Source of the DNA: Macrostomum lignano
Taxonomy: Eukaryota
NCBI GenBank assembly: GCA_002269645.1
Contig: NIVC01001813.1
Coordinates: 1 to 64,000 of the forward strand
Reading direction: 5' to 3'
Length of the DNA: 64,000 nucleotides
Part shown: one piece after another, positions 4,301 through 52,500 of the stretch
Numbering within the stretch: the first letter of the stretch is position 1
Layout of the letters: each line of letters opens with the position of its first letter
Notes under the pieces: model-generated
What the model was told of the DNA's origin: nothing
Seen by the model: only the letters and a program-made list of their open reading frames with translations
Databases searched by the model: none
Translations under genes and position numbers: made by a program

Positions 4301-5384
4301 GCTCCTCTACGACAAAGTAATGGTTAAACACAGCGTGCAGCTCTAAGACAGCGAATATACAGTTATCAACAAATCATTCTCTAGGAAACTTGATCGACAC
4401 AAATAATTGGCACCAGTATTGCTTTCGACTACGTTAACGAGACGCGCCAATTCAAATAGGACGCCATACGAGATCTTTGCGAGTATTGCAAGACAACAGT
4501 GGCAGAAAAAGACTAGAGTGGGAAGTGAGTTGCTTGCTTCCTATTCAGGTTAGTATTTTGCGTTGGTCTAACTTGAGCCTGGGGCACAGACTGTGGTCAG
4601 GGAAAGAGCAGGGAAAGTGGAAGTAGGAAAAGTGACTCCAATTTTATTTACGTACCAAGATTTCCTTGGTTCTATCCGCGATCCGAAGATCAAATATACT
4701 AAGTCTGCGGAGCTCAGTCTGCTTTCCATATACTCGTACCTTTGCTTGAGGAGCATTTGGATCAGTGAGGAGTCTGGCTAAAGTCTCGTTTCGATTGCCA
4801 AAAGCGATACAGTATTACATTACAATGTATTTCAAGCGATTAAACTGGTCAATGGGCTATAAGTTGCATTCAGCAACAGATTCATATTGAGGCCACACAA
4901 TGTGACATTATTGGCACAATGTTACGTCAATAAATGCAGAAGTATTGTATATAGTTGTAATACAGAAAAGCGACAATAGTTAGATAATGACATTGGAAAT
5001 TGAATTTCGCGATAGTATTACACCAACGCCACACGGCATTAACGCCGAACGAAAATGCACGGACTTGAAAGTAAACGATTTGCTTGGTTGCGTCGGAATT
5101 AAATCAGTAAATCAGTAAGAAGCATACGCTTTTTAAATTGCGAGTACCCGGTATGCACCATCACAGTTCGCAGCTGGGCAAATTATTCTGAAGAGAAGAA
5201 GAATTACGATTTTATTAGCAGAGCTACGAGAAGGGGAGCCGCCGGGGGAGGAGGGGCTAGGGAAAGAGGAGGGTATAAAAGGCTATTTAAGAACACTGTA
5301 GCAGACGGGTTATGCATGACACAGTAAGTAAAACAGAGAGGAGGGAAGAGCGTAACGAAGGGATAACCAAGGAGAGTAGAGGGT

Positions 5385-7879: not shown

Positions 7880-9710
7880 GTTTGACATGGTGGCTCCTAA
7901 ATGTTTGACATGGTGGCTCTTTTATGTTCGACATGGTGGCTCTTTAATGTTCGACATGGTGGCTCTTTAATGTTAGACATGGTGGCTCTTTAATGTTCGA
8001 CATGGTGGCTCTATAATGTTAGACATGGTGGCTCTTTAATGTTAGACACGGTGGCTCTTTAATGTTCGACATGGTGGCTCTTTAATGTTCGACATGGTGG
8101 CTGTTTAATGTTAGACATGATGGCTCTTTAATGTTTGACATTGCGGCTCTTTAATATTTGACATGGTGGCTCTTTTATGTTGGACATGGTGGTTCTTTTA
8201 TGTTCTACATGGTGGCTCTTTTATGCTTGACATGGTGGCTCTTTAATGTTTGACATGATGGCTCTTTTATGTTCGACATGGTGGCTCTTCTATGCTTGAC
8301 ATGGTGGCTCTTTACTGTTTGACATGGAGTCACATATATGTTCGACATGGTGGCTCTTTAATGTTCGACATGGTGGCTTTTTAATGTTAGACATGGTGGC
8401 TCTTTAATGTTAGACATGGTGGCTCTTTAATATTCGACATGGTGGCTCTTTAATGTTAGACATGGTGGCTCTTTAATATTCGACATGGTGGCTCTATAAT
8501 GTTAGACATAGTGGCTCTTTAATGTTCGACATGGTGGCTCTATAATGTTAGACATGGTGGCTCTTTAATATTCGACATGGTGGCTCTTTAATGTTTGACA
8601 TTGAGGCTCTTTAATGTTTGACATGGTGGCTCTTTTATGTTGGACATGGTGGTTCTTTTATGTTCGACATGGTGGCTCTTTTATGTTTGACATGGTGGCT
8701 CCTTACTGTTTGACCTGGATTCACATATATGTTTGACATGGTGGCTCTTTTATGTTCGACATGGTGGCTCTTTTATGCTTGACATGGTGGCTCTTTACTG
8801 ATTGACATGGAGTCACATATATGTTTGACATGGTGGCTCTTTTATGTTTGACATGGTGGCTCTTTTATGTTTGACATGGTGGCTCTTTTATGTTTGACAT
8901 GGTGGCTCTTTAATGTTAGACATAGTGGCTCTTTAATGTTCGACATGGTGGCTCTTTAATGTTAGACATGGTGGCTCTTTAATATTCGACATGGTGGCTC
9001 TTTAATGTTAGACATAGTGGCTCTTTAATGTTCGACATGGTGGCTCTATAATGTTAGACATGGTGGCTCTTTAATATTCGACATGGTGGCTCTTTAATGT
9101 TTGACATTGAGGCTCTTTAATGTTTGACATGGTGGCTCTTTTATGTTGGACATGGTGGTTCTTTTATGTTCGACATGGTGGCTCTTTTATGTTTGACATG
9201 GTGGCTCTTTACTGTTTGACCTGGATTCACATATATGTTTGACATGGTGGCTCTTTTATGTTTGACATGGTGGCTTTTTTATGTTTTACATGGTGGCTCT
9301 TTAATGTTAGACATGGTGGCTCTTTAATATTCGACATGGTGGCTCTTTAATGTTTGACATTGAGGCTCTTTAATGTTTGACATGGTGGCTCTTTTATGTT
9401 GGACATGGTGGTTCTTTTATGTTCGACATGGTGGCTCTTTTATGTTTGACATGGTGGCTCTTTACTGTTTGACCTGGATTCACATATATGTTTGACATGG
9501 TGGCTCTTTTATGTTTGACATGGTGGCTTTTTTATGTTTTACATGGTGGCTCTTTAATGTTAGACATGGTGGCTCTTTAATGTTCGACATGGTGGCTCTT
9601 TAATGTTCGACATGGTGGCTCTTTAATGGTCGACATGATGGCTCTTTAATGTTCGACATGGTGGCTCTTTAATGTTTGACATGGTGGCTCTTTAATGTTT
9701 GACATTGTGC
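7880..9710. repeat. 23-bp minisatellite (GACATGGTGGCTCTTTAATGTTN)n with higher-order blocks
   Basis: About 80 copies. Variant units containing TCACATATATG recur near 8330, 8720, 8810, 9225 and 9480. Confidence 0.95.
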
Positions 9711-9769
9711 TTTTTTGTGTTTAGCATTTGTGTTTTTAAGGTTTTTGAATAAAAAAATCTTTTTGCACT

Positions 9770-9830
9770 ACTAAGATTCGAACCCAGGTCGCTGCATTAG
9801 CATTCCAGTCTGTTCGCATCTATGCTATCT
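9770..9830 (-). mobile_element. tRNA-derived SINE head (Pol III A/B boxes)
   Basis: Minus strand has TAGCATAG (A-box-like, 9820-9827) and GGGTTCGAATC (B box, 9775-9785). It does not fold into a full cloverleaf and shares CAGCGACC.GG with the 28575-28630 head. Confidence 0.55.
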
Positions 9831-9839
9831 CTTGTCAAT

Positions 9840-10315
9840 TGGAATACGTGAATTGTGGCCCTTATAATTAAATTCTTATAGCAAATCGGTTAGAGTAAAA
9901 AGTTATGACATAATCAATTTCTCAGTCAGCCAATATCAGTGTCAATTTAAGTTGGCAATATTGTTACGCAATTTAAATCAAGTTTTGTGTGCATTTGTTC
10001 GGCACTGTTTTCAACTGGTTGTGATGTAATCTTTATCACAATTGGAATTCAGTCAGTCAGTTTTTTCTCTAGCATTCTTACAATGCATTTCAGGTCGAAA
10101 GAGCTGCTTGACCTTTGCAAAAAAGCATGTTTTTCGAATATTTAATCCCTTTAATATTGAGCAATTTCTTAGCCAAGATGCATGTACCGTCCCAGGAAAA
10201 TTTCTGATCGAATGGTGCAAGTTTGAAGAAAATCGGTTGAGCCATTTTTTCTGAAATCTATCGCATACCTACCTACCTACCTACCCACAGACAACTCATT
10301 TTTAGTATATAGGAT
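9840..10315 (+). mobile_element. Helentron/DINE-1-like non-autonomous element remnant
   Basis: The 3' part reads CAAGTTTGAAGAAAATCGGTTGAGCC..., then a (TACC)n microsatellite, ending TTTTTAGTATATAGGAT. This layout resembles DINE/HINE-type elements. The 5' boundary is uncertain. Confidence 0.45.
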
Positions 10316-26600: not shown

Positions 26601-27801
26601 CTGAATGAATGCAGCTGCGCCACTACTCGCTCTCAGCATCGCGACGCTAATGTCCAGTTAGGCAGCATTCTGAGCCGCGTCTCGAAGTCGGCCAGCTTCC
26701 TCACCTGATCGGCCGGAAGAAGGCGCCGTAGAGCAGCCAGGTCACGTGACTGCCGGAGGACCGCGGCTCCTCGAAGCATCGTTGCACAGCCAGCAGACAG
26801 CGGCTGGCCGCCAATTTCACCACGGAAACAGCGAAGCGCTAGATGTGAGATCAGGGTCACCAATTCGGATGCCAGGGTCACTGCACCATGCACCCAAGAA
26901 CATCTTAAGAACATCTACTTGAGAAGTCCTTGCATGCACCCCGCGACCAGTGTACATGTACCTCGTACTCATAATGTTATTGTCGGCAAAGCGCAACATG
27001 TGTCGTGAACATGCATGTACACAATTATGCAGACTGAATTTTTTGTACATGTACATGTAGCGGATCGTCAGGTAGGCCACCAAGGGCATAGTCAAATAAT
27101 GTTGGTTAGTTGTGGAGTTCGGTATAGATGAAAACCCAAAAATACGAGCGTACTTACAAGGAGCAGGCGAAGCCTTCATGGAAGAGTTTTGATAATTTTT
27201 CCAAGCCTGAGATTTCAAACAAGGCATCGCATGCAAAAAAGTCGATCCATGCTAACTTCCTCCCCGAACCAAGCCAAGGACCACTAAAAAAAGTTACCGC
27301 GGTAATTGCAACCCCCCAGAGCCCCACCAGGGCTGATCCGCGGGAAGCTAGCTCTTTCCCCCGTTTAATTAACAACTTTAACAATTGCAACACTAGACGA
27401 TACAACGGAAACATCTAGTGGTCCTTGAACCAAGCTTTAGACTAAATATATATTTTGGAAACCGTAATTTTTAGCTTTTCCTGCCACCAAAATTAACAAT
27501 TTTCTTTAACAAAAGAAAATGTTAGTTCATTAGTTTTTTTTATTCTTCGTGTTTGCATCGTATATTTTTGCAACTTTAAAAAATTAAACAAAAACAAACA
27601 ATATTTTTGCATATATTTGGCAAAAATAAGCTAGTAATCTACTAAATCAAAATTTTTAACTTATGAGTCTATATAATTTTTATTAATAAGTTTAATAAAA
27701 AAAATTAGTAATAGAGTTTAGCCTGTATTTTAACTTTGTGTATAAAAAACGATAATTAGTATAGAGCTGATTCGAAAACGTCAAACTCGACGTATATCTA
27801 G

Positions 27802-29572: not shown

Positions 29573-32500
29573 ATGTCTGGCACTCATGGACTGTCAAGTC
29601 AGCTTGACAGAGAAATTCCAAACTGTTCTGACTCTCAGCAGCTGGGAACTGGCGATGGGAACTGGAAGAAGAGGTCAGTAAATACCAGTATATTCATAGT
29701 TACATCATTTTCATTATATTATAAGTTTTCTCTTCTCTCCAGGATTCGAACCCCTGTCCACCCACTTAGACAATGGTTGCTGATACCAATGGGCTATTTT
29801 AATCTGAGTCTGTCAGAATTTATTTCCATCTGACTGGGTCTCGAACCCCCGTCCTTCCGGGTGGAGGTCAAGCGCGGTTGGCAGTAGGCCATGCAAATCC
29901 CCAGTCGTTCAGAGTTGCAGCCGCACTATAAACTATTAATTTGTTTTCGCCACCTTAAAGACGGCAACTGCAGCGCCTGCGACAAGCGGCGGACGCCGAA
30001 GAAGACGAGCTGAAACGGCGCGAGGCCGCCCTCGCTCTGCGCCGTCAACGGCTGCTGGAAGCCACTGAGGGCTTGCAAAGGCAGCAGCAGCGGATGCGCA
30101 GCCTGTCGGATGTTGCCAGCGCCAGGAGCGACAATGCTGAGCACTGGGAGCTTTGTGAGCCTGTCTCAGTGCCTGTCTGCTGTTTTAGTGTCTGCCTGTC
30201 CTAGTGTGTGTCTGCCTGTCCTAGTGTGTGTCTGCCTGTCCTAGTGTGTGCCTGCCTGTCCTAGTGTGTGTCTGCCTGTCCTAGTGTGTGTCTGCCTGTC
30301 CTAGTGTGTGTCTGCCTGTCATACTGTGTGTCTGGCTGTCCTAGTGTGTGTCTGCCTGTCCTAGTGTGTGTCTGCCTGTCCTAGTGTGTGTCTGCCTGTC
30401 ATACTGTGTGTCTGGCTGTCCTAGTTTCTGTCTGCCTGTCTGTCTGTCTGTTTAATTCCCATAGTTTTTCAGTTTCCCCAATCCCCACAATTTCGCAGGG
30501 CAACCCAACAACTTAAATTCGGTTGGCCTGTTAAATGCCGGTCGCCTGGAAGACACGTGGCGCCTACTTAAAGTAGCGCCCCCGGTTGCTAAGGCATCTA
30601 CAAGGCGACAGCGGCAGCGCAGTCGCGGTCATTCACCTAAACAGCAGCAGCAGCGGAGGGCGCACTCCTCCGCGCCTACTCGAGTCGAAGCGGTCAGTTT
30701 TGCCGAGAAATATCGACCGAAAAAAATGCACAAAACCCGCTGTTGCCAGGGACGCGGCTTGCTTGGCAACAGTACACCTGTTGACAGTGGCAATGATTGG
30801 GTCGGTCTGCGCGACTGGGAAACTCAGCAGACAGCGCTGGCTCGCGTTGCTATGGAAACGGCAGTCAATAGCAGCGCAGCATTGATAAAGCCGGTTACCA
30901 TGGAAACTAAAGTTAAACCAGTGCAAACTAAGCCTCTTGCAGTGGCAGCTGATAAACGTTTCAGAGCCAAACAGATCACCTTTGCAACTGAGAACGCTGA
31001 GCCTGAAAATAAAACGGACTTTGAGCCCCCCGTTTCCATGGTGATTGAGTACAAGCCGCTGTCACCGAGTTCTCAGGCTGAGGCTCAAGATGCCGATGAG
31101 TCTGCGCCGGTGACCGTCCAGCCGCTCAGTTCGGTACCTGCGGTATCGACCGTTGCTGACGAGGCCTCAGCTGATGCGCCCGATGAGGCGCCTGACGATG
31201 CAGCCCGGGACCTCAGCAGCTCCATAGAAACCGCGGCTGCTGCGCTTGCTAAGCTGCCAACAGGCTCGAACTCGAAGCCGTCTCCAGTGTACACAACTGT
31301 CCCGCTGCCGGTTGCTAAGGCTGTTGCTGCATTCGATCCGCAACCGGCTGAAATTGGATTGGTTAAGCAGCAGCCCGTTGGCATAGCAACCAGGGAAGCG
31401 GAAACTGCCGCTCCGCCGGAGCGCAGGCGCAGCATTCTGAGGACCCCCGGCCGGCAGCAGCGCAAGAGCGTCCGGTTCGCCGACTCGGCGCTCGTCTCCA
31501 GCAGCCGGAGTCCGGGCTCCAGCGTGCGGTCTCCGGTTGTTGCCGATGCTCGCGATGGTGATGATGAAGCTGATGGTGATGTTGAGCAGTGGGATGCTGC
31601 GCCCACGAGTTCTCCGTTGATCCCGCCGCCGCCGCCTCCGCTGCAGCGGCCTCAGAGCCAGCAACAGCGGCAGTCAGCATCGCAACCGTCTCGCAGCCTC
31701 CTGATGCGGCGCCGACTGCTGGAAGCGAACATCCCGATGCTCACCGAGCAGCGGCCGGCCGCCTCCGCCATCCTGCTGGCCGAGCGGCGCCGCTTCCTGA
31801 CCGTCGGCCAGGCGGCGTCGCCGAGTCCGCCGAGTTCGGGTCCAGGTGAGCCGCAGCCAGCCGTGCGGGTGGTGCACCATCACTTCGGGCACCGGCCTGC
31901 GGGGCTCCGGCAGCAGCAGCAGCAGCAGCACTTCCACTCCGTCAGCTCGCATCAGCAGCGAAGGCAAGCGACTGCGGCTATCGCGAGGAAGCTGGAGGAC
32001 TCCACTGTGGCCGGGTCTGCCGGCTCCATCGTGTTTCCTGGTGGGTGCTCACCATTGCTGTTGTTTTAAATCTTGAAACCGTACCTCACCGCCCTGAACC
32101 CGTAGCTCACAGCCCTGAACCCATAGCTCAAAGCCCTGAACCCGTAGCTCAAAGCCCTGAACCCTTATCTCAAAGCCCTGAACCCGTAGCTCAAAGCCCT
32201 GAACCCTTATCTCAAAGCCCTGAACCCGTAGCTCAAAGCCCTGAACCCGTAGCTCAAAGCCCTGAACCCGTAGCTCAAAGCCCTGAACCCGTAGCTCAAA
32301 GCCCTGAACCCATAGCTCAAAGCCCTGAACCCGTAGCTCAAAGCCCTGAACCCGTAGCTCAAAGCCCTGAACCCGTAGCTCAAAGCCCTGAACCCGTAGC
32401 TCAAAGCCCTGAACCCGTAGCTCAAAGCCCTGAACCCGTAGCTCAAAGCCCTGAACCCATAGCTCAAAGCCCTGAACCCGTAGCTCAAAGCCCTGGACCC

Positions 32501-34271
32501 TTATCTCAAAGCCCTGAACCCATAGCTCAAAGCCCTGAACCCGTAGCTCAAAGCCCTGGACCCTTATCTCAAAGCCCTGAACCCATAGCTCAAAGCCCTG
32601 AACCCATAGCTCAAAGCCCTGAGCCCATATCTCAAAGCCCTGAACCCGTAGCTCAAAGCCCTGAACCCATAGCTCAAAGCCCTGAACCCTTATCTGAAAG
32701 CCCAGAAACTGTAGCTCAGTCCCAGCCCACTCTCCCATCAAATGCTCAAACTTTGTTTCTGCTCAGCCAGCATAAACTCAAACTCGAATCCCAACTCGGA
32801 TTGCTCACCGAACTCGCAGCCCCACAGCCGCAGAAGGAATTTCTCAGGGTATCGAATTTCAGTCCAAGTGATGCCGGCGACTCCAGCGGTAAAATGCCAA
32901 GTCCTGGAAGGCTTGCTGAAAAAATCAATAACTGCTTTGTGTGCCTGCAAAGTTAGACTAATTCAGTCTTTAGTCTCCTAGCCGGCTGTGTAAACTGTCT
33001 GCTTATGCGATTTCTTCAATGTTTAATCTTCATTTTATTGTCGGTGGGATAATATCCCAATCCATATTATCACAATCCATCCCAATCCACACCCAGTGGG
33101 ATAATATCCCAATCTACACCCAATGGGATCATATCCCAACCCACACCCAGCGGGATCATATCCCAATAATCCACAGCCAGTGGGATAATATCCCAAAAAT
33201 TCACACCCAGTGGGATAATATCCCAAAAATTCACACCCAGTGGGATAATATCCCAATCCACACATAGCGGGATAATATCCCAATCCACACCCAGCGGGAT
33301 CATATCCCAATAATCCACAGCCAGTAGGATAATATCCCAATAATCCACACCCAGTGGGATAATATCCCAAAAATTCACACCCAGTGGGATAATATCCCAA
33401 TAATCCACAGCCAGTGGGATACTATCCCAATCGAAAGCCAGATTCTTCAGTGGATTAACACTAATTCAAAAAAGAAACATGGGAATATTGTGACGTGTTC
33501 TAATCGTTAATCCGAACTTTTTCTGTCTTAAAAATTATAATTCTACATTTGCTCTTTAGTGCTTTTAGTCAAAACTATGTACTTGTAGAAAAAAATACTA
33601 TAATTCGCGTAATATCTATAATCACTTAAAATATACAGTAATAGTATTTCTAAATTATTGATTCCTTCGTAATGATCCAATTTGTGCAATCGGAAGCTAC
33701 CTGTAAAATTTGGGATTTCATCAGTCATTCCTCCTTCCCTGCAGGCCTGTCACCCTCGGCCAGCCCACGCAGCGCGCAGTCGCTGAGCCTTTCGCATCCC
33801 AGCATCCGGGTTCTGCATCAGCGAGAGCCCGCCGCCGCTGTTCGGGGTGAGTCTGTCCTTCCTTTCATCTCCCACATCTCACACCCTTCCCATTCCCTTC
33901 ATCTCACACCCTTCCCATTCACTTCATCTCACACCCTTCCTTCTTTCCATCTCACACACTTCCCACTCCCACATCTCCCATCCTTCATCTTACACCCTTC
34001 CCATTCCCTTCATCTCACACCTTTCCCATTCACTTCATCGCCCACCCTTCCATTCCCTTCATCTCACACCCTTTATTTCCTTCATCTCACACCCTTCTTT
34101 CCATCTCACACTCTTCATTCCCTTTATCTTACACCCTTCCCATTCAATTCATCTCACACCTTCCATTCCCTTCATCTCACAGCCTTCTTATTCCCTTCAT
34201 CTCACACCTGCATCATGATCCCCTGTTGAATTGCAGCCGGCGCACCTCCGGCGGAGCTGTGCAATTTCTAA
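29573..34271 (+). CDS. Uncharacterised coiled-coil plus long disordered protein with PP1-docking motifs; exons 29573-29673, 29961-30154, 30499-32069 (or spliced at 32040 to 33745-33846 and 34237-34271)
   Basis: The phases chain consistently (2, then 1) through GT-AG sites. Exon 2 encodes RQLQRLRQAADAEEDELKRREAALALRRQRLLE. Exon 3 is open from 30499 into ORF 30726-32069. The optional downstream exons are phase-1 compatible but less certain. No family recognised. Confidence 0.6.
29735..29895 (-). mobile_element. Two degenerate tRNA-derived SINE heads in intron 1
   Basis: Minus strand reads TAGCCCATTGGTA...GGGGTTCGAATCC (about 29740-29795) and TGGCCTACTG...GGGGTTCGAGACC (about 29837-29893). Neither folds as a full tRNA. 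Confidence 0.45.
30190..30450. repeat. 20-bp intronic tandem repeat (CTAGTGTGTGTCTGCCTGTC)n
   Basis: About 12 copies, filling intron 2 of the 29573 gene. Confidence 0.93.
30585..31390. promoter_or_regulatory. Exonic cluster of RFX X-box motifs
   Basis: GTTGCTATGGAAAC 30846-30859, GTTACCATGGAAAC 30894-30907, GTTTCCATGGTGAT 31032-31045 and GTTGGCATAGCAAC 31377-31390, plus weaker matches at 30585, 30742, 30757, 30975, 31218 and 31311. Function is not demonstrated. Confidence 0.55.
32085..32700. repeat. 21-bp minisatellite (CCCTGAACCCGTAGCTCAAAG)n
   Basis: About 29 copies. It explains the SPEPVAQ-repeat ORF 32045-32956. Confidence 0.95.
33045..33430. repeat. About 27-30-bp tandem repeat whose unit contains the hairpin TGGGAT-AAT-ATCCCA
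   Basis: About 13 copies, each carrying a 6-bp inverted repeat. Confidence 0.9.
33870..34210. repeat. About 25-bp degenerate pyrimidine-rich tandem repeat (CCTTCCCATTCCCTTCATCTCACAC)n
   Basis: Fills the putative intron 33847-34236. Confidence 0.85.
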
Positions 34272-35307: not shown

Positions 35308-35627
35308 TCATGTGACCAGAACCCCTGCGTATCACGTGACCTACAGTCGCTTGCTTTAGATTTGACTCACTTGTAATTAATCACGTGACAAATATCCAAT
35401 AGAGCACGTATAGAAGTTTAATTAGTCACGTGACTAGAACCCAAACAGAGTTTTGTTAAAAAATCTTATTGGTCACGTGACTAGAACTCACTGCGTATCA
35501 CGTGACCTAGCGTCCCTATTTTAGAATTGTTTGCAGATTTTAATTTAGTCACGTGATTTTTTAACTCTCTTGTAATCTGTTTGGTCCCCTGTCCAGTCTG
35601 GGTCAGCAATCCAGGCAGTCACGTGAC
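35308..35627. promoter_or_regulatory. Cluster of TCACGTGA (CLEAR/USF-type E-box) motifs upstream of BBIP1
   Basis: TCACGTGA at 35332, 35381, 35426, 35473, 35498, 35549 and 35619, plus TCATGTGAC at 35308. Three copies are full GTCACGTGAC palindromes. Confidence 0.6.
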
Positions 35628-35697
35628 TGTGCGCGTGTCTCTTATCTTCAATCGCCACCTGATTCATGACAAACATAGCGCCCCGGCCTCTCATGCA

Positions 35698-35949
35698 ATG
35701 ATGGCCAGCAGCACGCAGCAGCAGCAGCAGCAGCAGTTGTCGCAGAAAGACGCTCTGAAGCCGGTCCTGCCGCAGCACGGAATGCTGTTCCAGGAGCACA
35801 TTCCCTCCGCTGTGCTGTGCAAGCCCAAGCTGCTGCCATTGAAGTCTTTCACCCTTGAACGGCTGGAGTTGCTGCAGAGAGACGCGGAGGAGACTGTGAA
35901 ACGGCTGCAGCTCGAGGAGACTGGAGGCGGGCCCAGCGATGGCCGGTGA
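35698..35949 (+). CDS. BBIP1: BBSome-interacting protein 1 (BBIP10/BBS18), 83 aa, single coding exon
   Basis: VLPQHGMLFQEHIPSAVLCKPKLLPLKSFTLERLELLQR matches the BBIP1 signature VLP..G.LF.E....VLCKPKLLPLKS.TLE.LE. First ATG at 35698. Confidence 0.9.
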   Translation: MMASSTQQQQQQQLSQKDALKPVLPQHGMLFQEHIPSAVLCKPKLLPLKSFTLERLELLQRDAEETVKRLQLEETGGGPSDGR

Positions 35950-37086: not shown

Positions 37087-40414
<3,328 letters not shown>

Positions 40415-41216: not shown

Positions 41217-42843
41217 TTAACCATGAGCGGGCGGATGGCCCGATTTCCTCAGAAACTGCAGAAAGGTCTTTGTGCCACCTGACTGTCGGTAGATCACCCA
41301 CGAGTTCCGCACAAGAATCGCAAGAAGATGAAATCCCAGCTTGTGGAACCAGCGCATGCTCTTTCGGTTCGCGAGATACGGGTGCATTGAGGCGTCCAAA
41401 TGGTCAATCCCACCCATACTGGAAGAATAGGCAAGCACGCTAGCAGGCTTTTGCACCACCTGCATTGCACCACCGCGACGGTTGCGTTGAACCTGAATGC
41501 ATTCTGCCTTGCCCGCCGTGTCCAGCAAATACAGGGTCTTGGTGCCGCTTTGCTTCCTGTCGACAAATTTACACGCTAAGAGGTCACCTGAACATGCGAA
41601 TGCAGATGAAGTTGGGTGGATGTTGACAGCCTGCAAATCAGCCGGAATGCCGCGATCCTTCCGCACCGTCCCGGTCAGCAGCGTATCGTGTTGCAGCATC
41701 CAATCGGCCAGCCGGCGTGATGTAAACCAACTATCAGTGAACACATGATGTCCGAGATGGAGGAGACCGCGGCACAGCTCTGCCACAACTCTCTCGCTCA
41801 TACTCAAGCCTTGACATCCGAGTCGTTCACCAAACTGTTGATTAACCTCAGGAGACGTGTGTATGACGAAGTTCCATAAATATGAACTCTCAGTCTCGCA
41901 AAGGCAGTACAGCTTTATGCCATACTTGCTTCGCTTCGACGGGATATATTGCTTGAAAGCAACTCTCCCTTTATAAAGCACTAGCGTCTCATCAATTGAA
42001 AGTCGCTGTCGGGGCATGTAGTTATTGCTGCAGAGGTGCCTCACTCGATCGAGAAAGGGCTCTATCTTTGCCAATGGACCAGCACCTAAATCCTCGGAGC
42101 AGTCGTAGAAACGGAGACACGACGGAGCTGCTTAAATCGGTCTCTTGATAGAGAGAAAGGCTTGGAAAGAAACGGGCAGTGAAAGATCAGGTCGGTTGAC
42201 CAGTAGCTGGCTATTTCTGGCTTCTTGTCGACTCCCATGAGCAGCACAATGTCCACCAACTTTCGAGCTTCATTAGTGGAGCAATCACGCCAGTTTAACA
42301 CCAGCTTCGGTACAGCATCCTGAGTCTCTGCCTCCTGAAAGATCTTCCAAGCTTTTGCGTTGGTCCATCGGCTAATATCTTCAAACAGTTGATCCGTCAG
42401 AAATAGCTTCAGGAAAGCTTCTTCGTTTTCATCCGCAGCATGTGGAGAATGCCAATCAGGTCGTGCACCGGGGGTACCGAGGAATTAAGGCAAGGCTGAT
42501 GGTCGATTATCAGTGTCAGCTTGAACCATGTGCCACTCACCAACGTGTTCGACTCCTGGGTTCTCTACCTCATCTTCAAACTCATCAACGGCCTCGTCAG
42601 CAGTTGAGTAATAGCTAGACGAATCAGCTGACTCCGGTTTTGTTGATAAAGGATTAGTTTGAATGGATCTTGGAAACTCTATGCTAGAACTCTATGGAAT
42701 GCATTTGACTTTAACAGCTCCCGACGTCTACGGGTGTGAAAGTTAGACTAAGAAAATTTGTCTAATTTGTCTATGGCCCGATTTCGGACCAAGCAGTCGG
42801 GAACGGGTATGCTAGCAGGCAAAGGCAGTCTTGTAGTGGTTAA
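41217..42843 (-). mobile_element. Decayed piggyBac transposon (DDD transposase, frameshifted, C-terminal CRD missing)
   Basis: SIDETLVLYKGRVAFKQYIPSKRSKYGIK, VFTDSWFTS and MGGIDHLD (ORF 41217-42074). Upstream pieces read FLKLFLTDQLFEDISRWTNAKA and YWSTD..SRDRF, with a frameshift near 42115 and a stop near 42484. TTAA at 41217-41220; candidate other TTAA at 42840-42843. Confidence 0.9.
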
Positions 42844-43425: not shown

Positions 43426-45736
43426 TCAGCCTTCGGTCTCGTCAACAACCGTAGCCAGCGAGTCTTTGTTCGGGGCTTCTTCCACGACCCGCGGCAGAGG
43501 CGGCGGCGCGGTGGCTTTCTTGAACACGTCGCAGCCGCCGCGCTCTCCGGCGGACTCGTCGGCCGAGGATGACGAAGCCGAAGACGGATCGGCGATGGTG
43601 GCGCGCCTGAACCGAAGGCCGTTCCGGGACTCCAACTCGACGCCTTGGTCTCTGGGCTCGCAGCTGTGCAGCTTGAGCACGCCGCTCAGGTCCTGCTGCG
43701 AATGGTCCAGGCCTTTGCAGTCGCGGTACAAAGTCCACAGCCGGTGCACGATCTCCGAGCAGACGATGTCGCCGCAGTTCAAGGCGATCATTTTCAGCAC
43801 AAAGGTGCCGTCCTGTCGCAGAAAGGTGCGGCAGAAGGCCTGCACGTACTCGTTCTTCTTGGTCTCCTGGTAGTTATCGGACAGCTTGAGCATCCGGTTG
43901 ACGAAGTGGTTGCCGCAGCTGGTGTGGCAGACTCTGAACAGCCAGGTCGCCAGGCTGATGACTGTCGCAACCGAGACGAACACGAACCAGAACCAGAGGA
44001 AGATGTAGATCTTCTCGTTGATCATGTTCACCGGCAGGATGCACTGCGCGAACTGCCAGTTGGCGCCGACAGCGGATTTCACCAGCACTGCGCAGCAGCC
44101 GATCCTCGGGAAGATTTTGCTCACCTGCCAGTCCCGGCCGTGAGAAATGTCCCACAGCAGCTGGGCGCCAAGGAAGTCGTAGCGCTTCGACTCAATGCCG
44201 AGGAATTTGCGCATCAGGCCCAGCTGGCTGAGCACGTTGGTCAGGTAGACAATCTTGATGAGCAGGTAGCTGAGGATGAGCCAGCTGCCCGACGCTTTGG
44301 CGGGCATGGCAACAGAGAGCGCGCGCCAGGCCTTCGCAAAGGCGTTCCGCATCTTGTCCGGACCTCGGAGAGACCTGCGGGTCGCGGAGATTGCTCCGTC
44401 TGATAATTACATGGATAAACCCTCTGTCACAACTTCAATAGCTGTTGTGACCCTTTGTCCCGATTCCACTGGACTGTTGTGACCCTTTGTCCCGATTCCA
44501 CTGGACTGTTGTGACCCTTTGTCCCGATTCCACTGGACTGTTGTGACCCTTTGTCCCGATTCCACTGGACTGTTGTGACCCTTTGTCCCGATTCCACTGG
44601 ACTGTTGTGACCCTGTGTCCCGATTCCACTGGACTGTTGTGACCCTTTGTCCCGATCCCACTGGACTGTTGTGACCCTTTGTCTCAATTCCACTGGACTG
44701 TTGTGACCCTTTGTCCCAATTCCACTGGACTGTTGTGACCCTTTGTCCCGATTCCACTGGACTGTTGTGACCCTTTGTCCCGATTCCACTGGACTGTTGT
44801 GACCCTTTGTCTCAATTCCACTGGACTGTTGTGACCCTTTGTCCCAATTCCACTGGACTGTTGTGACCCTTTGTCCCAATTCCACTGGACTGTTGTGACC
44901 CTTTGTCCCGATTCCACTGGACTGTTGTAACCCTTTGTCCCGATTCCACTGGACTGTTGTGACCCTTTGTCCCAATTCCACTGGACTGTTGTGACCCTTT
45001 GTCCCGATTCCACTGGACTGTTGTGACCCTTTGTCCCGATTCCACTGGACTGTTGTGACCCTTTGTCCCAATTCCACTGGACTGTTGTGACCCTTTGTCC
45101 CAATTCCACTGGACTGTTGTGACCCTTTGTCCCGATTCCACTGGACTGTTGTGACCCTTTGTCCCAACTGCAGAGTTTCTAAGTCACAAAAGTCACGCAC
45201 TTTGCGCAGTTCTTGCGCATCATCTGATGCAACATCCGGCTAGCGTGGTTCACCATCTTCTCGTGCCGTTCCCCAGTCTCCCTGGCAGCGTCCCTGACAA
45301 CACGGACCACGTGACCAACGTCCGTGCCGGCCCTATCGTAGCTGATGACGTTCCAGAGCAGCCTGGGCAGGTAGAACAGCACGGCCTGCACCGCCAGCAC
45401 GATGGGCACCCACTGGTAGTAGACGATCTTATCGCCCGCGTAGGCCGACACTCCACCGTCGTGCAAGTCGGCGTACAACGAGAAGTTCACTGGGTGCACC
45501 GCGTAGGTGCCCTCCGTCCAGCAGTAGCTGTTCACGTACTCCAGCTGGTTCTCCACCGTGAAGCCGATCGGGGTGGGCACGAAGCAGGCCACGGGCTCCA
45601 GGAAGTAGGTCTTCATGGTCACCAGGCTGCAGAGCACCGTGAGCAGGCAGCTGGTCCACTTGTAGCTCAGCTCGTCTGCGAAGTCTTCAACTCCGATGTA
45701 GTTGACGATGTCCATCTTGCGGAATTGCTCCAGCAT
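43426..45736 (-). CDS. inx: Innexin (gap-junction protein) copy 1, about 494 aa; exons 45201-45736 and 43426-44374
   Basis: [68 protein letters not shown] and [10 protein letters not shown]. The phase-2 join AA|GTGCGT ... ccgcag|G keeps the frame. Confidence 0.93.
44440..45170. repeat. 32-bp minisatellite (GACTGTTGTGACCCTTTGTCCCGATTCCACTG)n filling the innexin-1 intron
   Basis: About 23 copies. Confidence 0.95.
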
Positions 45737-45779
45737 TCCCTCTGGACCCGCCTGTTATTGTTGGTTGGGGCGGAATTTA

Positions 45780-46795
45780 ATAACCCACAGCAGATGAGGA
45801 TTAACCCACAGCCAGATGAGGATTAACCCGTGAGTACATGATGAACCCACAGCCAGATGAGGATTAACCCGTGAGTACATGATGAACCCACAGCCAGATG
45901 AGGATTAACCCACAGCCAGGTGGGGACATGATTAACCCACAGCCAGATGAGGATTAACCCACAGCCAGATGAGGATTAACCCACAGCCAGATGAGGATTA
46001 ACCCACAGCCAGATGAGGATTAACCCACAGCCAGATGAGGATTAACCCACAGCCAGATGAGGATTAACCCACAGCCAGGTGAGGATTAACCCACAGCCAG
46101 ATGAGGATTAACCCACAGCCAGATGAGGATTAACCCACAGCCAGATGAGGATTAACCCACAGCCAGATGAGGATTAACCCACAGCCAGATGAGGATTAAC
46201 CCACAGCCAGATGAGGATTAACTTACAGCCAGATGAGGATTAACCCACAGCCAGATGAGGATTAACCCACAGCCAGATGAGGATTAACCCACAGCCAGAT
46301 GAGGATTAACCCACAGCCAGATGAGGATTAACCCACAGCCAGATGAGGATTAACCCACAGCCAGATGAGTATTAACCCACAGCCAGATGAGGATTAACCC
46401 ACAGCCAGGTGGGGACATGATTAACCCACAGCCAGATGAGGATTAACCAACAGCCAGAAGAGGATTAACCCACAGCCAGGTGAGTACATGATTAACCCAC
46501 AGCCAGGTGAGTACATGATTAACCCACAACCAGGTGAGTGCATGATTAACCCACAGCCAGGTGAAGATTAACCCGTGAGTACATGATGAACCCACAGCCA
46601 AATAAGGATTAACCCACAGCCAGGTGAAGATTAACCCGTGAGTACATGATGAACCCACAGCCAAATAAGGATTAACCCGCAGCCAAATAAGGATTAACCC
46701 ACAGCCAGGTGAGTACATGGTTAACCCACAGCCAGGTGAGGACATGATTAACCCACAGCCAGGTGAGGATTAACCTACAGCCAGGTGAGCACACA
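45780..46795. repeat. 22-bp minisatellite (GGATTAACCCACAGCCAGATGA)n in the probable 5'UTR intron of innexin 1
   Basis: About 45 copies, between a minus-strand donor GTAAGT (46805-46810) and an acceptor near 45752. Confidence 0.95.
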
Positions 46796-48459
46796 GTTAA
46801 GATTAACTTACTGATTCCTCATTATCAGACCCCATACTGGCTGCCCAGCAAGCAGTTTGGCGACTTTGGAAAACTGCCGAGCAGATCGAATAATTCGAAC
46901 TCGAGATTCGACACAAATGAAAAATGCGAACTCAGAACCGGCTCGATCAGGCAAACCGCAAGGCTCGCCTTTCTCTTCTTCTCTTCTCTCTCTGCCTCTT
47001 GAGCTCGCGGCAGGGCAAGCCCAGTCTGCTTCCACGCAAATTTGCTTTTGTGGGCAGCCAATTTTGGCATTGTGTACTCGCAGCATTTTTTATTATTTGG
47101 CCAATGCAACACCGCGCTGCTGAGATGCTCTCAGAACTCTTCATCTCATCTCTTTCCCTTTCTAACTGCTGTTACCTCTCTCTCTCTCTCCTCTTCTGAG
47201 ACCGCGGCTTGCGCTCAGCTCGCCCTGACGTGAAACTGCGACCCAAACGACTTGCCAACCAAAATTATTGCTTATACCCAGATTTCCATATCTGCCACAG
47301 GCTACTCGCAAGTAGAGAATAGATGGGAGATTTCCTAAACATATTCGAGCATATCATCGAGAGCTTAACTCCGCTTTACTTGTAGAAAATCCCACAAATG
47401 CTCTAACTATCCTATCTACTGACATTTCTAGAACTGAAACTACTAATAGTAGAGTAAAAGCAAATCTCAGTTACCCGTTTATGCAGTCGATTCCCCGGCT
47501 CATCAATGTCTACGGAAAGAGGTAAAAATGACATTGATGAAGGCCCTGGGGTCTTTTATATATTGGTAAATTAATTTCCATAGAAAACAGTTCTGGTTAA
47601 AAAATCGGTTCGGTAGCAGTGGAAATATTTACAGAAAGAATAACAATTTCGATTGAGGTAGCGAACACAAAGCTACTCGTAAGTAGTACAGCAGAAAAAT
47701 CACAACGGCGCACAACAGACAGCTGGGCTAACACAAAAATCAAAACGTGTATTGCACTTGGCAATAATTTTTTTTCATGTTGGATATTGCTTATACATGT
47801 AAAATCAACAACTGGACTTTGTAGCTTGGAGCAAAGCTAACTAATTAATTAGTTAATTAGTTAATTAGTTAATTAGTAGGCACGCAGATTATGCGCACTT
47901 TATTGCTCACTAGGTGAGACCCACAACTCGTGAAATTGCGGCTAACATTTGATGGCTTATTGAATACAGTAACTGCTTCGCGTGAGAGTTTTCGAATTCG
48001 AATAATGAGCACAGAAACGCCAAATAGCAACACGTACGAGCTTACTACTATTAGTATAGTAATTTCCAATACAGTAGGCACAACAAAAATTATGAAAATT
48101 ACAACAGCTTAGAAATCTATGCGATTTCTGTCGCATAGACAGAGCCTGAATGAATACTACTTGTCATCATCATCACATACTACTTTCAAGTAGTTTGCTA
48201 CGCGTGCACAGAAAAAATGACTAGAATAAGTATATGTTATCGGGTGCAGACTTGCTGATAAACACGGGTTGTGCATTCAGTGTGCAATTGGATTCAAGCG
48301 CTCGCTGGCTGAGAATGTACAATGCACGGACAGTGAATGTAAATTGCACGGACAGTGAATGTAAATTGCACGGACAGTGAATGTACATTGCATGCACAGC
48401 CAGTGTACATGTATACTTAATAAACAAAAAAGAAACTATTCCTTTCAATCCATTCTGTA

Positions 48460-49485
48460 ATCATGTTGACTCTGCACTGCCCATTCTGTAATCATGTGAC
48501 TCTACACTGCCCATTCTGTAATCATGTGACTCTACACTGCTCATTCTGTAATCATGTGACTCTACACTGCTCATTCTGTAATCATGTGACTCTACACTGC
48601 TCATTCTGTAATCATCTGACTCTACACAGCTCATTCTGTAATCATGTGACTCTACACTGCTCATTCTGTAATCATGTGACTCTACACTGCTCATTCTGTA
48701 ATCATGTGACTCTACACTGCTCATTCTGTAATCATGTGACTCTACACAGCTCATTCTGTAATCATGTGACTCTACACTGCTCATTCTGTAATCATGTGAC
48801 TCTACACTGCTCATTCTGTAATCATGTGACTCTACACTGCTCATTCTGTAATCATGTGACTCTACACTGCTCATTCTGTAATCATCTGACTCTACACAGC
48901 TCATTCTGTAATCATGTGACTCTACACTGCTCATTCTGTAATCATGTGACTCTACACTGCTCATTCTGTAATCATCTGACTCTACACAGCTCATTCTGTA
49001 ATCATGTGACTCTACACTGCTCATTCTGTAATCATGTGACTCTACACTGCTCATTCTGTAATCATCTGACTCTACACAGCTCATTCTGTAATCATGTGAC
49101 TCTACACTGCTCATTCTGTAATCATGTGACTCTACACTGCTCATTCTGTAATCATCTGACTCTACACTGCTCATTCTGTAATCATGTGACTCTACACTGC
49201 TCATTCTGTAATCATGTGACTCTACACTGCTCATTCTGTAATCATCTGACTCTACACTGCTCATTCTGTAATCATCTGACTCTACACAGCTCATTCTGTA
49301 ATCATGTGACTCTACACTGCTCATTCTGTAATCATGTGACTCTACACTGCTCATTCTGTAATCATCTGACTCTACACTGCTCATTCTGTAATCATGTGAC
49401 TCTACACTGCTCATTCTGTAATCATGTGACTCTACACTGCCCATTCTGTAATCATCTGACTCTACACTGCCCATTCTGTAATAAT
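48460..49485. repeat. 30-bp minisatellite (TCATTCTGTAATCATGTGACTCTACACTGC)n between the two innexins
   Basis: About 34 near-perfect copies starting just after the innexin-2 stop codon. Confidence 0.97.
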
Positions 49486-49533
49486 ACTGCTTTTGCCACT
49501 GGGTCTCCAAAGCCAGTCAAAGATGCTTTGATT

Positions 49534-52500
49534 TCAAACGGGTGCCTCGTAGGTCGCCGACTTCTTGCGCGCTCCGCCGATGGCCGCCTCCACCGTCACC
49601 GTGGTGGCCGACGGCCGCTGTCGCGTTTCGCCGCCGCTTGCCGGGTGCGAGACAAATCGCTGAAGCGCCGGGGGCGACTTCTCGAACTCGGCAACGGGAG
49701 CTGGCGGCTGCTGCTGCTCAAGCAGACGCTTCTCAGTCTCTTCCGCCTCGGCCTCGGGCTCCGGCGGCACGCAGACGACGCCCTCTGGCGCCGGCGGCTC
49801 GCCGTAGCGTCTTCGTCGATAAACCGACCAGAGGTTCTGCACCACCTCCGAGCAGATCACGTCGCCGGAGTTGAGCGCAATCATCCTCAGCAGGAAGGTG
49901 CCGTCCTGACGCAGGAAGTCGCGGACGAACCGGTGCAGGTCGCGCTTGTCCACGCCACCGCCGCGGCCGTCCCAGGTGTCCGTCATTTGCAGGTAGCGCT
50001 TGACAAAGCCCGCCCGCCGCCTGATCTGCACAAGGCGCCAGACCCACATCGGGACGCTGAACACGGTGACAATGGCCACGCCGAGCACCCAGAACCACAG
50101 GAACACGTAGATCTTCTCGTTGATCATGTTGATCGGCAGGGTGCACTGCGAGAACACGAAGTTGCCGCCGCTCGACAGTCGGTAGAAGACGGCACAGGCG
50201 CCAACCCTGGGGAACACCATCGTCTGCGTCCAGTCGCGGCCTCGGCGAAGGTTCTGAAAGACGGCGGCGCCGTACGCGAAGTAGGTGGAGTTGAAGCCCA
50301 GGAAGGCGTGCATGAAGTACAGCTGGCCGATCGCGTTGGCGGTGTAGCACAGCTTCATCGCAAAGTAGATGAAGATCAGCCAGTTGCCGAGCCGGCGCGA
50401 TGGCAGCAGGAAATGGCGCTGAATCCTGCGCTGCAGCTTCTGCGCCAGCGTCAGCTTGGAGAGCTGGGAAGGGGGGGGGGGCAGTTCGTTGAGCAAATCT
50501 CTGGGAATTAGGGTCTGCTAGCAGTCTTAGTCCCATTTGGGCTAAGAAGAAATTGAAGAAATGTTTTTTTTAAAAACTATGAAAAGTATGTTACGAGTAA
50601 AACGCCTTGCATAGTCACTAAAGTCTAAAGCAGAAATAACAATATCCCTAATAGCGAGCTTTTCTGATTAAGATTCCAAATGACCCAAGGATTCCCTGTC
50701 AGCAATTCCCTGCGATCCCTGGTATCTCAGCAATTCCCCATGGCCCTTGGTGTCTTAGCAATTCCCTGTGATCCCTGGCATCTCAGCAATTCCCCATGGC
50801 CCTTGGTGTCTTAGCAATTCCCTGTGATCCCTGGCATCTCAGCAATTCCCCATGGCCCTTGGTGTCTTAGCAATTCCCTGTGATCCCTGGCATCTCAGCA
50901 ATTCCCCATGGCCCTTGTTGTCTTAGCAATTCCCTGTGATCCCTGGCATCTCAGCAATTCCCCATGGCCCTTGGTGTCTTAGCAATTCCCCATGATCCTT
51001 GACATCTCAGCCATTCCCCATAATCCTTGACATCTCAGCAATTCCCCATGATCCTTGGTATTTCAGCAATTCCCCATGAGCCTTAGCATCTTAGCAACTC
51101 TTCTTGATCCTTTTATTTGAATTTTATCTACGCTTGTAATTCTAACAAATTTTGGCTACTTTTTATCGATTTTATGAATGTTTCAAATTCTTATTTTATT
51201 TAAATCACGGATAGTATTGTTTATAATGCCTCATCATTTCCGGGTTGGCAAGAATTTTCTCGCTCGCAAGTTGGCTAACTCTAAGCATTGGCAAATTTTG
51301 CAAATGGAAGTCTAACAGTTCTGCTTGTTGTTCATTAGGCAAATGTTCTCTTTGACCGAACTTACACATCCTGTTTTATCTATTTTCAGCTATGTCTCTT
51401 TCCTACGCAAATAATATATTTGCAATTTATTTTCTATAATTCTATCGATCTATTATTGTACAATTTGATATTTGATCTTATTTTGATTTTGGCGCCACTT
51501 CAACGCCGCGGAAAATATTTTAGCGCCATTTTAGCGCCGCTGGATTAGTGGATTTTAGTGCCAAGACCCAGTCTAATACAGCGCCTCCATTCGCCAGCCC
51601 AGCAGCCTCACCCCAGAGTGCTCGCTCCTCTCCAGCTTCTCATTCTGAAAGAGCATCTGCTCCAGCCGTTTGCACACGTGCTGCACCAGCTTGGCGTGCT
51701 TCTCGGAGTCCGAGGTAACCGCATCGTTGGCCGCCCGGATGATGTGGCCGACATCCGTGCCAGCTCTGTTGTAGCTCATCATGCTCCACAGCACCTTGGG
51801 CAGGTAGAATAGCAGGGATTGAAGGCCCAGCACGAACGGCACCCATTGGTAGTAGATTATCCGCCTGTCCTCGTACTTGGCTATCGGGTCTTTCAAAGTG
51901 TTGTCGATGTGGAACTCGGACAGAGGCACCGCGAATGTGCCTGAAAGTTGTGTATTATAATCATAATTCATATGCCTAGTTGTCTATCTATCCCTGTGTC
52001 CACTCCCCAGTTACTTATCTATCCCCGTGTCTATACACCCAGACTCTTATCTATCCCCGGGAGCGCTGTGTCTGCACCCAGGCTCTTATCTATCCCTGTG
52101 TCCACTCCCCAGTTACTTATCTATCCCTGTGTCTATACACCCAGACTCTTATCTATCCCTGTGTCCACTCCTTAGTTACTCATCTATCCCTGTGTCCACT
52201 CCCCAGTTACTCATCTATCCCTGTGTCCACTCCCCAGTTACTTATCTATCCCTGTGTCCACTCCCCAGTTACTCATCTATCCCTGTGTCCACTCCCCAGT
52301 TACTTATCTATCCCTGTGTCTATACACCCAGACTCTTATCTATCCCTGTGTCCACTCCCCAGTTACTCATCTATCCCTGTGTCCACTCCCCAGTATCCCA
52401 CATCTATCCCTGTGTCCACTCCCCAGTATCCCACATCTATCCCTGTGTCCACTCCCCAGTATCCCACATCTATCCCTGTGTCTATACACCCAGACTCTTA

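Follow-up and report, generated by a model that had tools for sequence, protein, structure and literature searches.

Candidate RFX-type X-box sites in a coding exon of a Macrostomum-specific orphan gene

Background

Targets of the RFX/DAF-19 transcription factors in Caenorhabditis elegans, such as xbx-1, osm-5 and bbs-1/2/5/7/8/9, carry a 14-bp imperfect palindrome, the X-box. Here we analyse a cluster of X-box-like palindromes located in exon 3 of an orphan gene of the flatworm Macrostomum lignano, within a 64 kb stretch of DNA (contig NIVC01001813.1, positions 1 to 64,000, assembly GCA_002269645.1) that is referred to below as the window. The validated X-boxes of C. elegans are non-coding and mostly single, and usually lie 60-300 bp upstream of the ATG, with the whole set spanning -60 to -767 (PMC3245922). 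Genes with several sites and X-boxes inside an exon (exon 1 of human MAP1A) are also on record: of the two X-boxes of C. elegans F25B4.2 the proximal one activates and the distal one represses, the RFX-regulated yeast genes RNR2/3/4 possess strong and weak sites, and the two X-boxes in exon 1 of MAP1A are associated with repression by RFX1 (PMC3245922). The promoter X-box of human DCDC2 has been used as a probe in electrophoretic mobility shift assays (EMSA) (PMC5024701).

The sites in the Macrostomum exon share the 14-bp imperfect palindrome with the C. elegans targets, but there are four of them, accompanied by half-sites, and they form in-frame parts of a coding exon, 1.3-1.8 kb past the start codon of the host gene. 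As in F25B4.2, RNR2/3/4 and MAP1A, several X-boxes of unequal strength occur together, and those of MAP1A are exonic too; unlike in these genes, as they are described in PMC3245922, the set found here is in frame within coding sequence and consists of candidate sites recognized by sequence. DCDC2 is a ciliary gene with the X-box as a single element in its promoter, whereas here the identical 14-mer, GTTGCTATGGAAAC, encodes the peptide VAMET in an orphan gene.

Coding exons that act as enhancers or contain transcription-factor sites were reportedly described by Birnbaum et al. in 2012 and Stergachis et al. in 2013 as "eExons" and "duons", and these cases are said to rest on chromatin immunoprecipitation or DNase data together with reporter assays, in conserved vertebrate exons. 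The Macrostomum exon resembles them in the presence of transcription-factor sites in translated sequence and in a choice of codons biased towards the motif; it differs from them in that the evidence consists of sequence statistics and in that the exon is lineage-specific and has an unusual codon usage. The X-box, genes with multiple X-boxes, exonic X-boxes and coding exons with transcription-factor sites are therefore all already described, and the original prediction for this locus, which spoke of an undescribed dual-coding regulatory system, was overstated, as exonic transcription-factor sites and multi-X-box genes are both known kinds. What would be unusual here, if real, is the occurrence of four in-frame copies in a lineage-specific host gene with aberrant codon usage.

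X-box-like palindromes in exon 3

An X-box is an imperfect palindrome of 13-15 bp, and the sites were compared with the refined consensus GTHNYYATRRNAAC and the looser consensus RTHNYYWTRRNRAC. They were also scored with a position weight matrix (PWM) built from 30 fourteen-base C. elegans X-boxes that had been validated by mutagenesis or by DAF-19 dependence (list in PMC3245922); under this PWM the scores of the validated sites range from 7.2 to 21.8 bits (median 18.6). All four strong 14-mers named in the original prediction are present (X-boxes 1 to 4, Table 1), and all four share codon phase 0, as had been claimed. X-boxes 1 and 2 score above the median of the validated sites and fit the refined consensus. 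The former has the same sequence as the core of the DCDC2 probe used in EMSA, and the reverse complement of the latter, GTTTCCATGGTAAC, is the validated X-box of C. elegans xbx-1, in agreement with the predicted assignment of the motif, by sequence, to the RFX X-box type. X-box 3 fits the loose consensus only: its left half and centre are good and its right half is poor, and its score is slightly below the 10th percentile of the validated sites (16.9 bits). X-box 4, with G at position 5, fits neither consensus; its right half is good, and it matches X-box 1 at 12 of 14 positions when inverted and at 10 of 14 in direct orientation. Reasoning from the genetic code, the codons of X-box 4 are the best X-box match that its peptide permits. 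Judged by sequence, two of the sites would thus be classed as X-boxes and two as borderline cases.

The strong sites are surrounded by weaker ones. The approximately six partial sites of the original prediction were recovered at 30585, 30742, 30757, 30975, 31218 and 31673, with 3 mismatches or 8-12 bits, each of them being individually weak. Those at 30742 and 30757 have 3 mismatches each (10.8 bits at 30757) and, unlike the strong sites, are both in phase 1. The word CGGTTGCTAAGGC from the weak site at 30585 occurs again at 31309. Half-sites of the form GTTGCY/RGCAAC number 10 within 30499-31544 and are present in other codon phases too (30499, 30742). Elsewhere in the window the count of GTTGCT is also high, which is due to a single minisatellite at 38.8-39.3 kb. 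Taken together, two palindromes of the high-affinity type, at a distance of 48 bp from each other, make up the cluster along with two degenerate palindromes and a number of half-sites. An X-box-like sequence at 27293, GTTACCGCGGTAAT, was dropped, as it scores less than 8 bits by PWM, and readings of the palindromes as STAT6-type sites (TTCN4GAA) or as Kozak contexts were rejected, since they fit one or two sites only.

The open frame of exon 3 extends for ~514 codons without a stop, and the exon is included in two transcript-based NCBI models, PAA63781.1 and PAA76459.1, which places the X-boxes within predicted translated sequence.

Clustering and codon choice

In the entire window exactly four positions score at least 14 bits, and these are the four strong sites; the next best position scores 13.1 bits. 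The total number of sites with at most 2 mismatches is ordinary (5 vs 2.49 expected from dinucleotide shuffles), but 4 of these 5 fall within 545 bp. Because the total is unremarkable, it is the clustering that constitutes the signal, and the claim that no comparable cluster exists elsewhere in the window stands.

Further controls were based on shuffling of the region 30585-31391. When the order of codons was permuted, with composition and codon usage kept, 0.04 sites with at most 2 mismatches were expected and 4 observed, and 0.34 sites with at most 3 mismatches were expected and 7 observed; none of 5000 permutations reached the observed counts. When the protein was held fixed and synonymous codons were shuffled, the expectation rose to 1.73 for at most 2 mismatches (4 observed, P=0.005) and to 3.4 for at most 3 mismatches (7 observed, P=0.002). 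Under the same synonymous shuffle the PWM gave P=0.024 for sites of at least 12 bits, P=0.0008 for at least 10 bits and P<0.0002 for at least 8 bits, as well as P<0.0002 for the summed scores of the top four sites. The excess grows if codons are drawn from the usage of eight other open reading frames (ORFs) of the window. Since synonymous shuffles with a fixed protein still expect 1.73 sites, most of the signal is carried by the order of amino acids, and codon choice adds roughly two-fold. The comparison of a PWM scan with codon-shuffled controls had been set beforehand as a possible refutation; the cluster survived it, as the choice of codons yields more X-box matches than the peptide requires. 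The synonymous sites appear shaped by the DNA motif, with an effect of modest strength.

The half-sites exhibit a similar tendency, with 8 copies of GTTGCY/RGCAAC in the part of the exon upstream of 31413 (the low-GC3 block, see below) vs 3.7 expected from synonymous shuffling (P=0.011). By hand count, 5 of the 6 Val-Ala dipeptides in the block use GTT-GCT, and GTT and GCT each make up less than half of their own codon family there. Among all 4096 palindromes of the same architecture counted in the exon, only low-complexity ones of the CAG/GCN kind equal or exceed the X-box.

A shared DNA palindrome in a low-GC3 block

The sequence between the strong sites had been predicted not to be a tandem repeat. 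Tandem Repeats Finder detected no tandem array over 30451-31553, and the strong sites are irregularly spaced (48, 138 and 345 bp). When the four sites are compared with one another, 4-10 of 28 flanking bases agree (7 being expected by chance), and 8-12 of 14 agree in the cores. In two pairs of sites the inverted match (12/14) is better than the direct one (10/14). The prediction thus holds on all these counts, and a decayed tandem or peptide repeat was rejected as the origin of the cluster on the grounds of the chance-level flanks, the irregular spacing, inverted matches at least as good as direct ones, and the lack of an array. With unrelated flanks, and with cores that agree at least as closely in inverted as in direct orientation, the sequences indicate that the shared unit is a DNA palindrome, as a dimeric DNA binder predicts, and not a peptide motif; as peptides, VAMET, VSMVI and VGIAT show little likeness. 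A reading frame would take such palindromes in the cheapest phase, in which GTT-NCC-ATG-GNA-ACN is translated as Val-(Ser/Pro/Thr/Ala)-Met-(Val/Ala/Glu/Gly)-Thr. The preference for phase 0 can be explained in this way, because besides Val, Met and Thr it demands no more than a small residue on either side of Met, so that the motif is carried by small residues that are common; by the genetic code, phase 1 requires His-Gly-Asn after Phe/Ser/Tyr/Cys, and phase 2 requires Pro-Trp.

All strong sites are contained in a block of exon 3 with a low GC content at third codon positions (GC3). A change point at 31413 (2*dLL = 33.6, i.e. twice the difference in log-likelihood), 23 bp beyond the last X-box, separates a GC3 of 0.53 on the left from 0.78 on the right within one exon, and eight other ORFs of the window have a GC3 of 0.75-0.88. 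In the block GC is higher at codon position 1 than at positions 2 and 3, which is coding-like. The low GC3 is compatible with a young or unusually constrained coding sequence, and would also be compatible with young coding sequence laid over older regulatory DNA.

A second genomic copy and related loci

Further M. lignano DNA was analysed at four loci (L001-L004). One of them, L004 (NIVC01000819.1), which was reached via the BBIP1 cluster member P0062, contains a second genomic copy of the host gene and retains the four strong sites base for base, at 4648, 4696, 4834 and 5179. Only ~0.7 changes are expected across the 56 bp of the four sites between the copies, and because the divergence is so low, this identity is without power as a test of conservation. 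Within the low-GC3 block the copies differ by 11 substitutions, with synonymous and non-synonymous ones roughly equal in number. The remaining loci, L001-L003, are older paralogues of the BBIP1 locus (protein 75% identical) that have only BBIP1 and an innexin in common with the window; in these loci both a homologue of the host gene and an upstream X-box cluster are absent. The innexin genes of the window form a cluster on the minus strand downstream of BBIP1 (43426-51971), which is syntenic with the paralogous BBIP1 loci. Another gene of the window, at 37087-38786, is like the host gene absent from them.

As a positive control for the use of X-boxes we looked at BBS5, a ciliary gene that is an RFX target in nematodes, of which no M. 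lignano sequence was found among the best 120 of 1664 matches. In the BBS5 locus of Capitella teleta (L008) no X-box occurs near the start of the gene. A 20.5-bit X-box is intronic, 3.7 kb beyond the ATG (8739), and a 17.7-bit X-box is located inside a neighbouring gene for a DDX23-type helicase (3066). The intronic candidate site suggests that gene-body X-boxes exist in a spiralian ciliary gene.

Proposed function and alternative explanations

We propose that exon 3 contains genuine RFX-type X-box sites that would be maintained at the DNA level in a coding exon of a Macrostomum-specific orphan gene and used locally, and we assign this proposal a probability of roughly 45%. It rests on the identity of two sites to proven RFX sites, on the clustering and on the codon bias, from which we infer a mechanism. 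RFX dimers would occupy the two strong palindromes, and the others more weakly, in ciliated cells, and the exon would act as an intragenic RFX-responsive module, be it as an internal promoter or enhancer or, possibly, by repression. Of the candidate targets the host gene is the most likely, since the sites lie directly upstream of its GC3-rich 3' part. Such a position, in front of a segment with a KSVRF motif, would suit regulation of the host gene from an internal promoter or an enhancer; the module might also repress, cf. MAP1A exon 1 or the yeast RNR genes. The GC3 anomaly of the block also led us to consider that an RFX-driven enhancer or internal promoter, consisting of a homotypic X-box cluster, was overprinted by a young lineage-specific ORF, with selection on the palindromes fixing the V-x-M-x-T words and the codon choice; a regulatory element would then determine part of a protein sequence. 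The boundary at 31413 would then be the join between old regulatory DNA and an older coding core. We regard this scenario as doubtful.

A number of observations weigh against RFX-dependent use of the sites. The position of the cluster is at odds with that of the validated nematode X-boxes, which are upstream of the ATG, within about 500 bp, and mostly single: at 1273-1817 bp beyond the host ATG (29573), the Macrostomum sites are not promoter-proximal. The P values of the synonymous shuffles are modest, and the region was chosen after the motif was visible. The two genomic copies differ by 1.0-1.7%, exons and introns alike (about 1.2%), which reveals no constraint, and the weak site at 30585 is not kept in L004, owing to a synonymous change of GTT to GTC. 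We found no known link of the host gene to cilia, and a literature search found no expression or RNA interference (RNAi) data for Mlig011083, Mlig000618 or Mlig008514, nor any mention of these tags. Coding exons can also mimic X-boxes, as illustrated by a 16.3-bit site on the minus strand of L001 (14023) that lies in a conserved innexin segment, LLPSQR. Finally, if the phase were free, the chance of all four strong sites falling in one phase would be 1 in 27; 3 of the 4 are preceded by a Pro codon, and Pro-Val is enriched in the block (8 observed vs 2.2 expected). The shared phase and the Pro-Val enrichment hint at a pattern at the level of the peptide.

X-box-like sites in other coding exons were also observed. 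A 20.2-bit site is present in another minus-strand coding exon of L001 (19362), and the two L001 sites have counterparts in L002 (13909 and 19807) and L003 (13915). Over ~85 kb of M. lignano DNA outside the cluster, X-box-like sites with at most 1 mismatch number 2 vs ~0.2 expected from base composition.

The resemblance to X-boxes could accordingly be a by-product of a repeated Pro-Val-x-Met/Ile-x-Thr pattern in a low-complexity region rich in Ala, Val, Pro and Thr, i.e. a coincidence at the protein or composition level with no role of the DNA. That every strong site begins with a Val codon in the same phase, that Pro-Val is over-represented, that random synonymous codons yield 1.7-2 sites by themselves when the protein is fixed, and that the exons at L001 14023 and 19362 give sites of 16-20 bits by accident all speak in favour of this explanation. 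Yet this would require an arbitrary peptide motif to fall on a known 12-base palindrome, and twice on experimentally validated sites; a single palindrome, read in either orientation, accounts for the DNA even though the peptides vary, the codon choice is biased toward the motif, and the amino-acid composition predicts only 0.04 sites. On balance we consider it unlikely. A non-coding regulatory X-box cluster, possibly amplified locally, may alternatively have been read through by a young ORF and fallen into disuse. Such a relic would agree with the GC3 of 0.53 in the block as against the rest of the exon and the neighbouring genes, with the sharp change just past the last X-box, with the orphan status of the gene and its absence from the older paralogous loci, with the homotypic motif cluster that the BBIP1 flank also holds, and with a genome of which ~15% consists of simple and tandem repeats (PMC5730564). 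The two best sites are, however, still perfect or nearly so, which argues against long decay, the distribution of GC over codon positions across the block is that of real coding sequence, and the flanks retain no similarity from unit to unit, so that we judge a relic improbable.

The exon had also been predicted to serve as an enhancer for BBIP1, which encodes a subunit of the BBSome. This gene indeed follows the cluster at a distance of 4.3 kb on the same strand, as stated in the prediction (PF14777, Table 1): its ATG at 35695 is 4305 bp beyond X-box 4, so that the sites lie 4305-4849 bp upstream of it. In C. elegans the BBS genes count among the classic targets of RFX (PMC3245922), and no X-box is found within 4 kb of BBIP1 itself. 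Its 5' flank contains instead seven TCACGTGA palindromes at 35332-35626, out of nine in the whole window; these boxes, mostly GTCACGTGAC or ATCACGTGAC, an E-box/CLEAR-like word, lie within 360 bp upstream of the ATG and look like a separate promoter. L004 keeps the TCACGTGA cluster (9661-9949), which the older paralogue loci of BBIP1 lack. In P0003, a UniProt model from an older assembly, frameshifted pieces of the host gene, of BBIP1 and of the gene that follows are fused. The model hints at read-through and could stem from transcripts of this kind or from precursors, such transcripts being common in a species with trans-splicing; a mistake in annotation would be another explanation. The junction that it implies lacks an AG acceptor, and the locus tags of the host gene (Mlig000618g1) and BBIP1 (Mlig008514g3) have different transcriptional-unit prefixes under the naming scheme set out in PMC5730564. 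Co-transcription of the two genes as an operon is for these two reasons not supported. In addition, no X-box cluster occurs in the 10 kb upstream of BBIP1 at its three older paralogue loci, the BBIP1 loci of a millipede, a tortoise and the salmon louse have no X-box of at least 13 bits within 10 kb on either side, and we found no literature linking BBIP1 to RFX. The predicted link is therefore weak: BBIP1 is a less likely target than the host gene, and a distal RFX enhancer for it seems quite improbable. Hardly credible, finally, is a role at the RNA level, in which the mutually complementary copies of the palindrome would form long-range stems in the mRNA. The predicted fold does pair X-box 2 with X-box 3 (11 nt fully complementary, 124 nt apart), with a z-score of -2.24 and 6 of 200 shuffles folding equally well; such pairing is automatic for any two copies of a palindrome, however, the z-score is weak, and an RNA role would leave the match to the X-box consensus unexplained.

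Host gene and genomic neighbourhood

The host gene corresponds in the window to the NCBI model PAA63781.1 (BOX15_Mlig011083g1, assembly GCA_002269645.1). We reconstructed it with six exons (Table 1), and a six-exon model built in the same way on the second copy in L004 is exactly NCBI PAA76459.1 (BOX15_Mlig000618g1). PAA63781.1 itself ends at 443 aa, owing to a frameshifting gap near 31506-31526. The product of exon 3 is 95-97% identical to M. lignano entries of UniRef. A Pfam search of the host gene yielded no domain, and neither a word-indexed search nor an exhaustive HMMER search of 1.84 billion representative proteins revealed homologues outside M. lignano. Two further models, P0003 and P0004, were considered as diverged paralogues and rejected, since they are frameshifted or fused models of the same locus. 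The original description of exon 3 as open and disordered was correct as to the open frame; as to disorder, composition alone, with 62% disorder-promoting residues, leaves the protein close to the Uversky boundary.

Several other features of the gene and of the window were observed. The GC3-rich part of the host protein opens with RRRSILRTPGRQQRKSVRF (31422-31478), in which KSVRF (31464-31478) resembles an RVxF docking motif for protein phosphatase 1 (PP1) and RRRS resembles a basophilic kinase site, both by sequence. A 21-bp in-frame indel and, after it, a patch of substitutions distinguish the two genomic copies at 31506-31540, and the lengths of the models differ as well (443 aa for the window copy, 673 aa for the other); a direct repeat prone to indels, or an artefact of annotation, may be responsible. 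Minisatellites with a period of 20-30 bp occupy the introns flanking exon 3 (30188-30440, 32074-32718, 33084-33432, 33875-34209), and ARAGORN found no tRNA-derived element in intron 1. Near the end of the window (~56.4-62.6 kb) there is a very large array, with two frames open for up to 2051 codons, and arrays of the minisatellite type dominate the mechanical list of ORFs. Between the genes on the BBIP1 side and the innexin cluster we found a minus-strand ORF (41217-42074) with a piggyBac-type transposase domain (PF13843, E=2.8e-44).

Table 1. Coordinates of the candidate sites, the host gene and BBIP1 in the window
Feature	Position	Strand	Description
X-box 1	30846..30859		GTTGCTATGGAAAC, VAMET in phase 0, 1 mismatch to GTTNCCATGGNAAC, 21.1 bits
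X-box 2	30894..30907		GTTACCATGGAAAC, VTMET in phase 0, perfect consensus match, 20.9 bits
X-box 3	31032..31045		GTTTCCATGGTGAT, VSMVI in phase 0, 2 mismatches, 16.4 bits
X-box 4	31377..31390		GTTGGCATAGCAAC, VGIAT in phase 0, 2 mismatches, 16.1 bits
Weak site, PVAKA	30585..30598		GTTGCTAAGGCATC, 3 mismatches, 10.8 bits, repeat family D2/D6
Inverted half-site pair GTTGCC ... GGCAAC, 17 bp apart	30742..30770		inverted repeat I7
Weak site	30975..30988		ATCACCTTTGCAAC, 9.8 bits
Weak site, SIET of the original prediction	31218..31231		AGCTCCATAGAAAC, 9.5 bits
Weak site, beyond the range of the original prediction	31673..31686		GTCAGCATCGCAAC, 3 mismatches, 11.5 bits
Low-GC3 block of exon 3, containing all strong sites	30499..31413	+	GC3 0.53
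Host gene, coding range	29573..34271	+	six exons, reconstructed in this analysis
Host gene, exons	29573-29673, 29961-30154, 30499-32040, 32820-32888, 33745-33846, 34237-34271	+	reconstruction
Host gene, exon 3	30499..32040	+	junctions read from the sequence, in agreement with models P0001, P0183 and P0184
BBIP1 (BBSome subunit), single coding exon	35695..35949	+	PF14777 BBIP10, E=6.7e-23

Conclusions

If RFX does not bind the sites, the locus warns that a strong regulatory motif can be imitated by rare peptide words that happen to be in frame. If RFX occupies them, exon 3 would be an unusually clean natural case of transcription-factor sites embedded in frame in a coding exon, its strengths being a long and highly specific motif, four copies, a measurable bias in codon choice, and a young orphan gene as the host. 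RNAi works in M. lignano. Transgenesis is available too (Wudarski et al. 2017). The species permits reporters with synonymous mutations, so that the locus, if the proposal is true, would provide a directly testable case of a regulatory code constraining coding sequence. It would also mean that RFX targets of flatworms need not obey the nematode rule of one X-box beside the start codon, and that a lineage-specific gene might join the ciliary programme.

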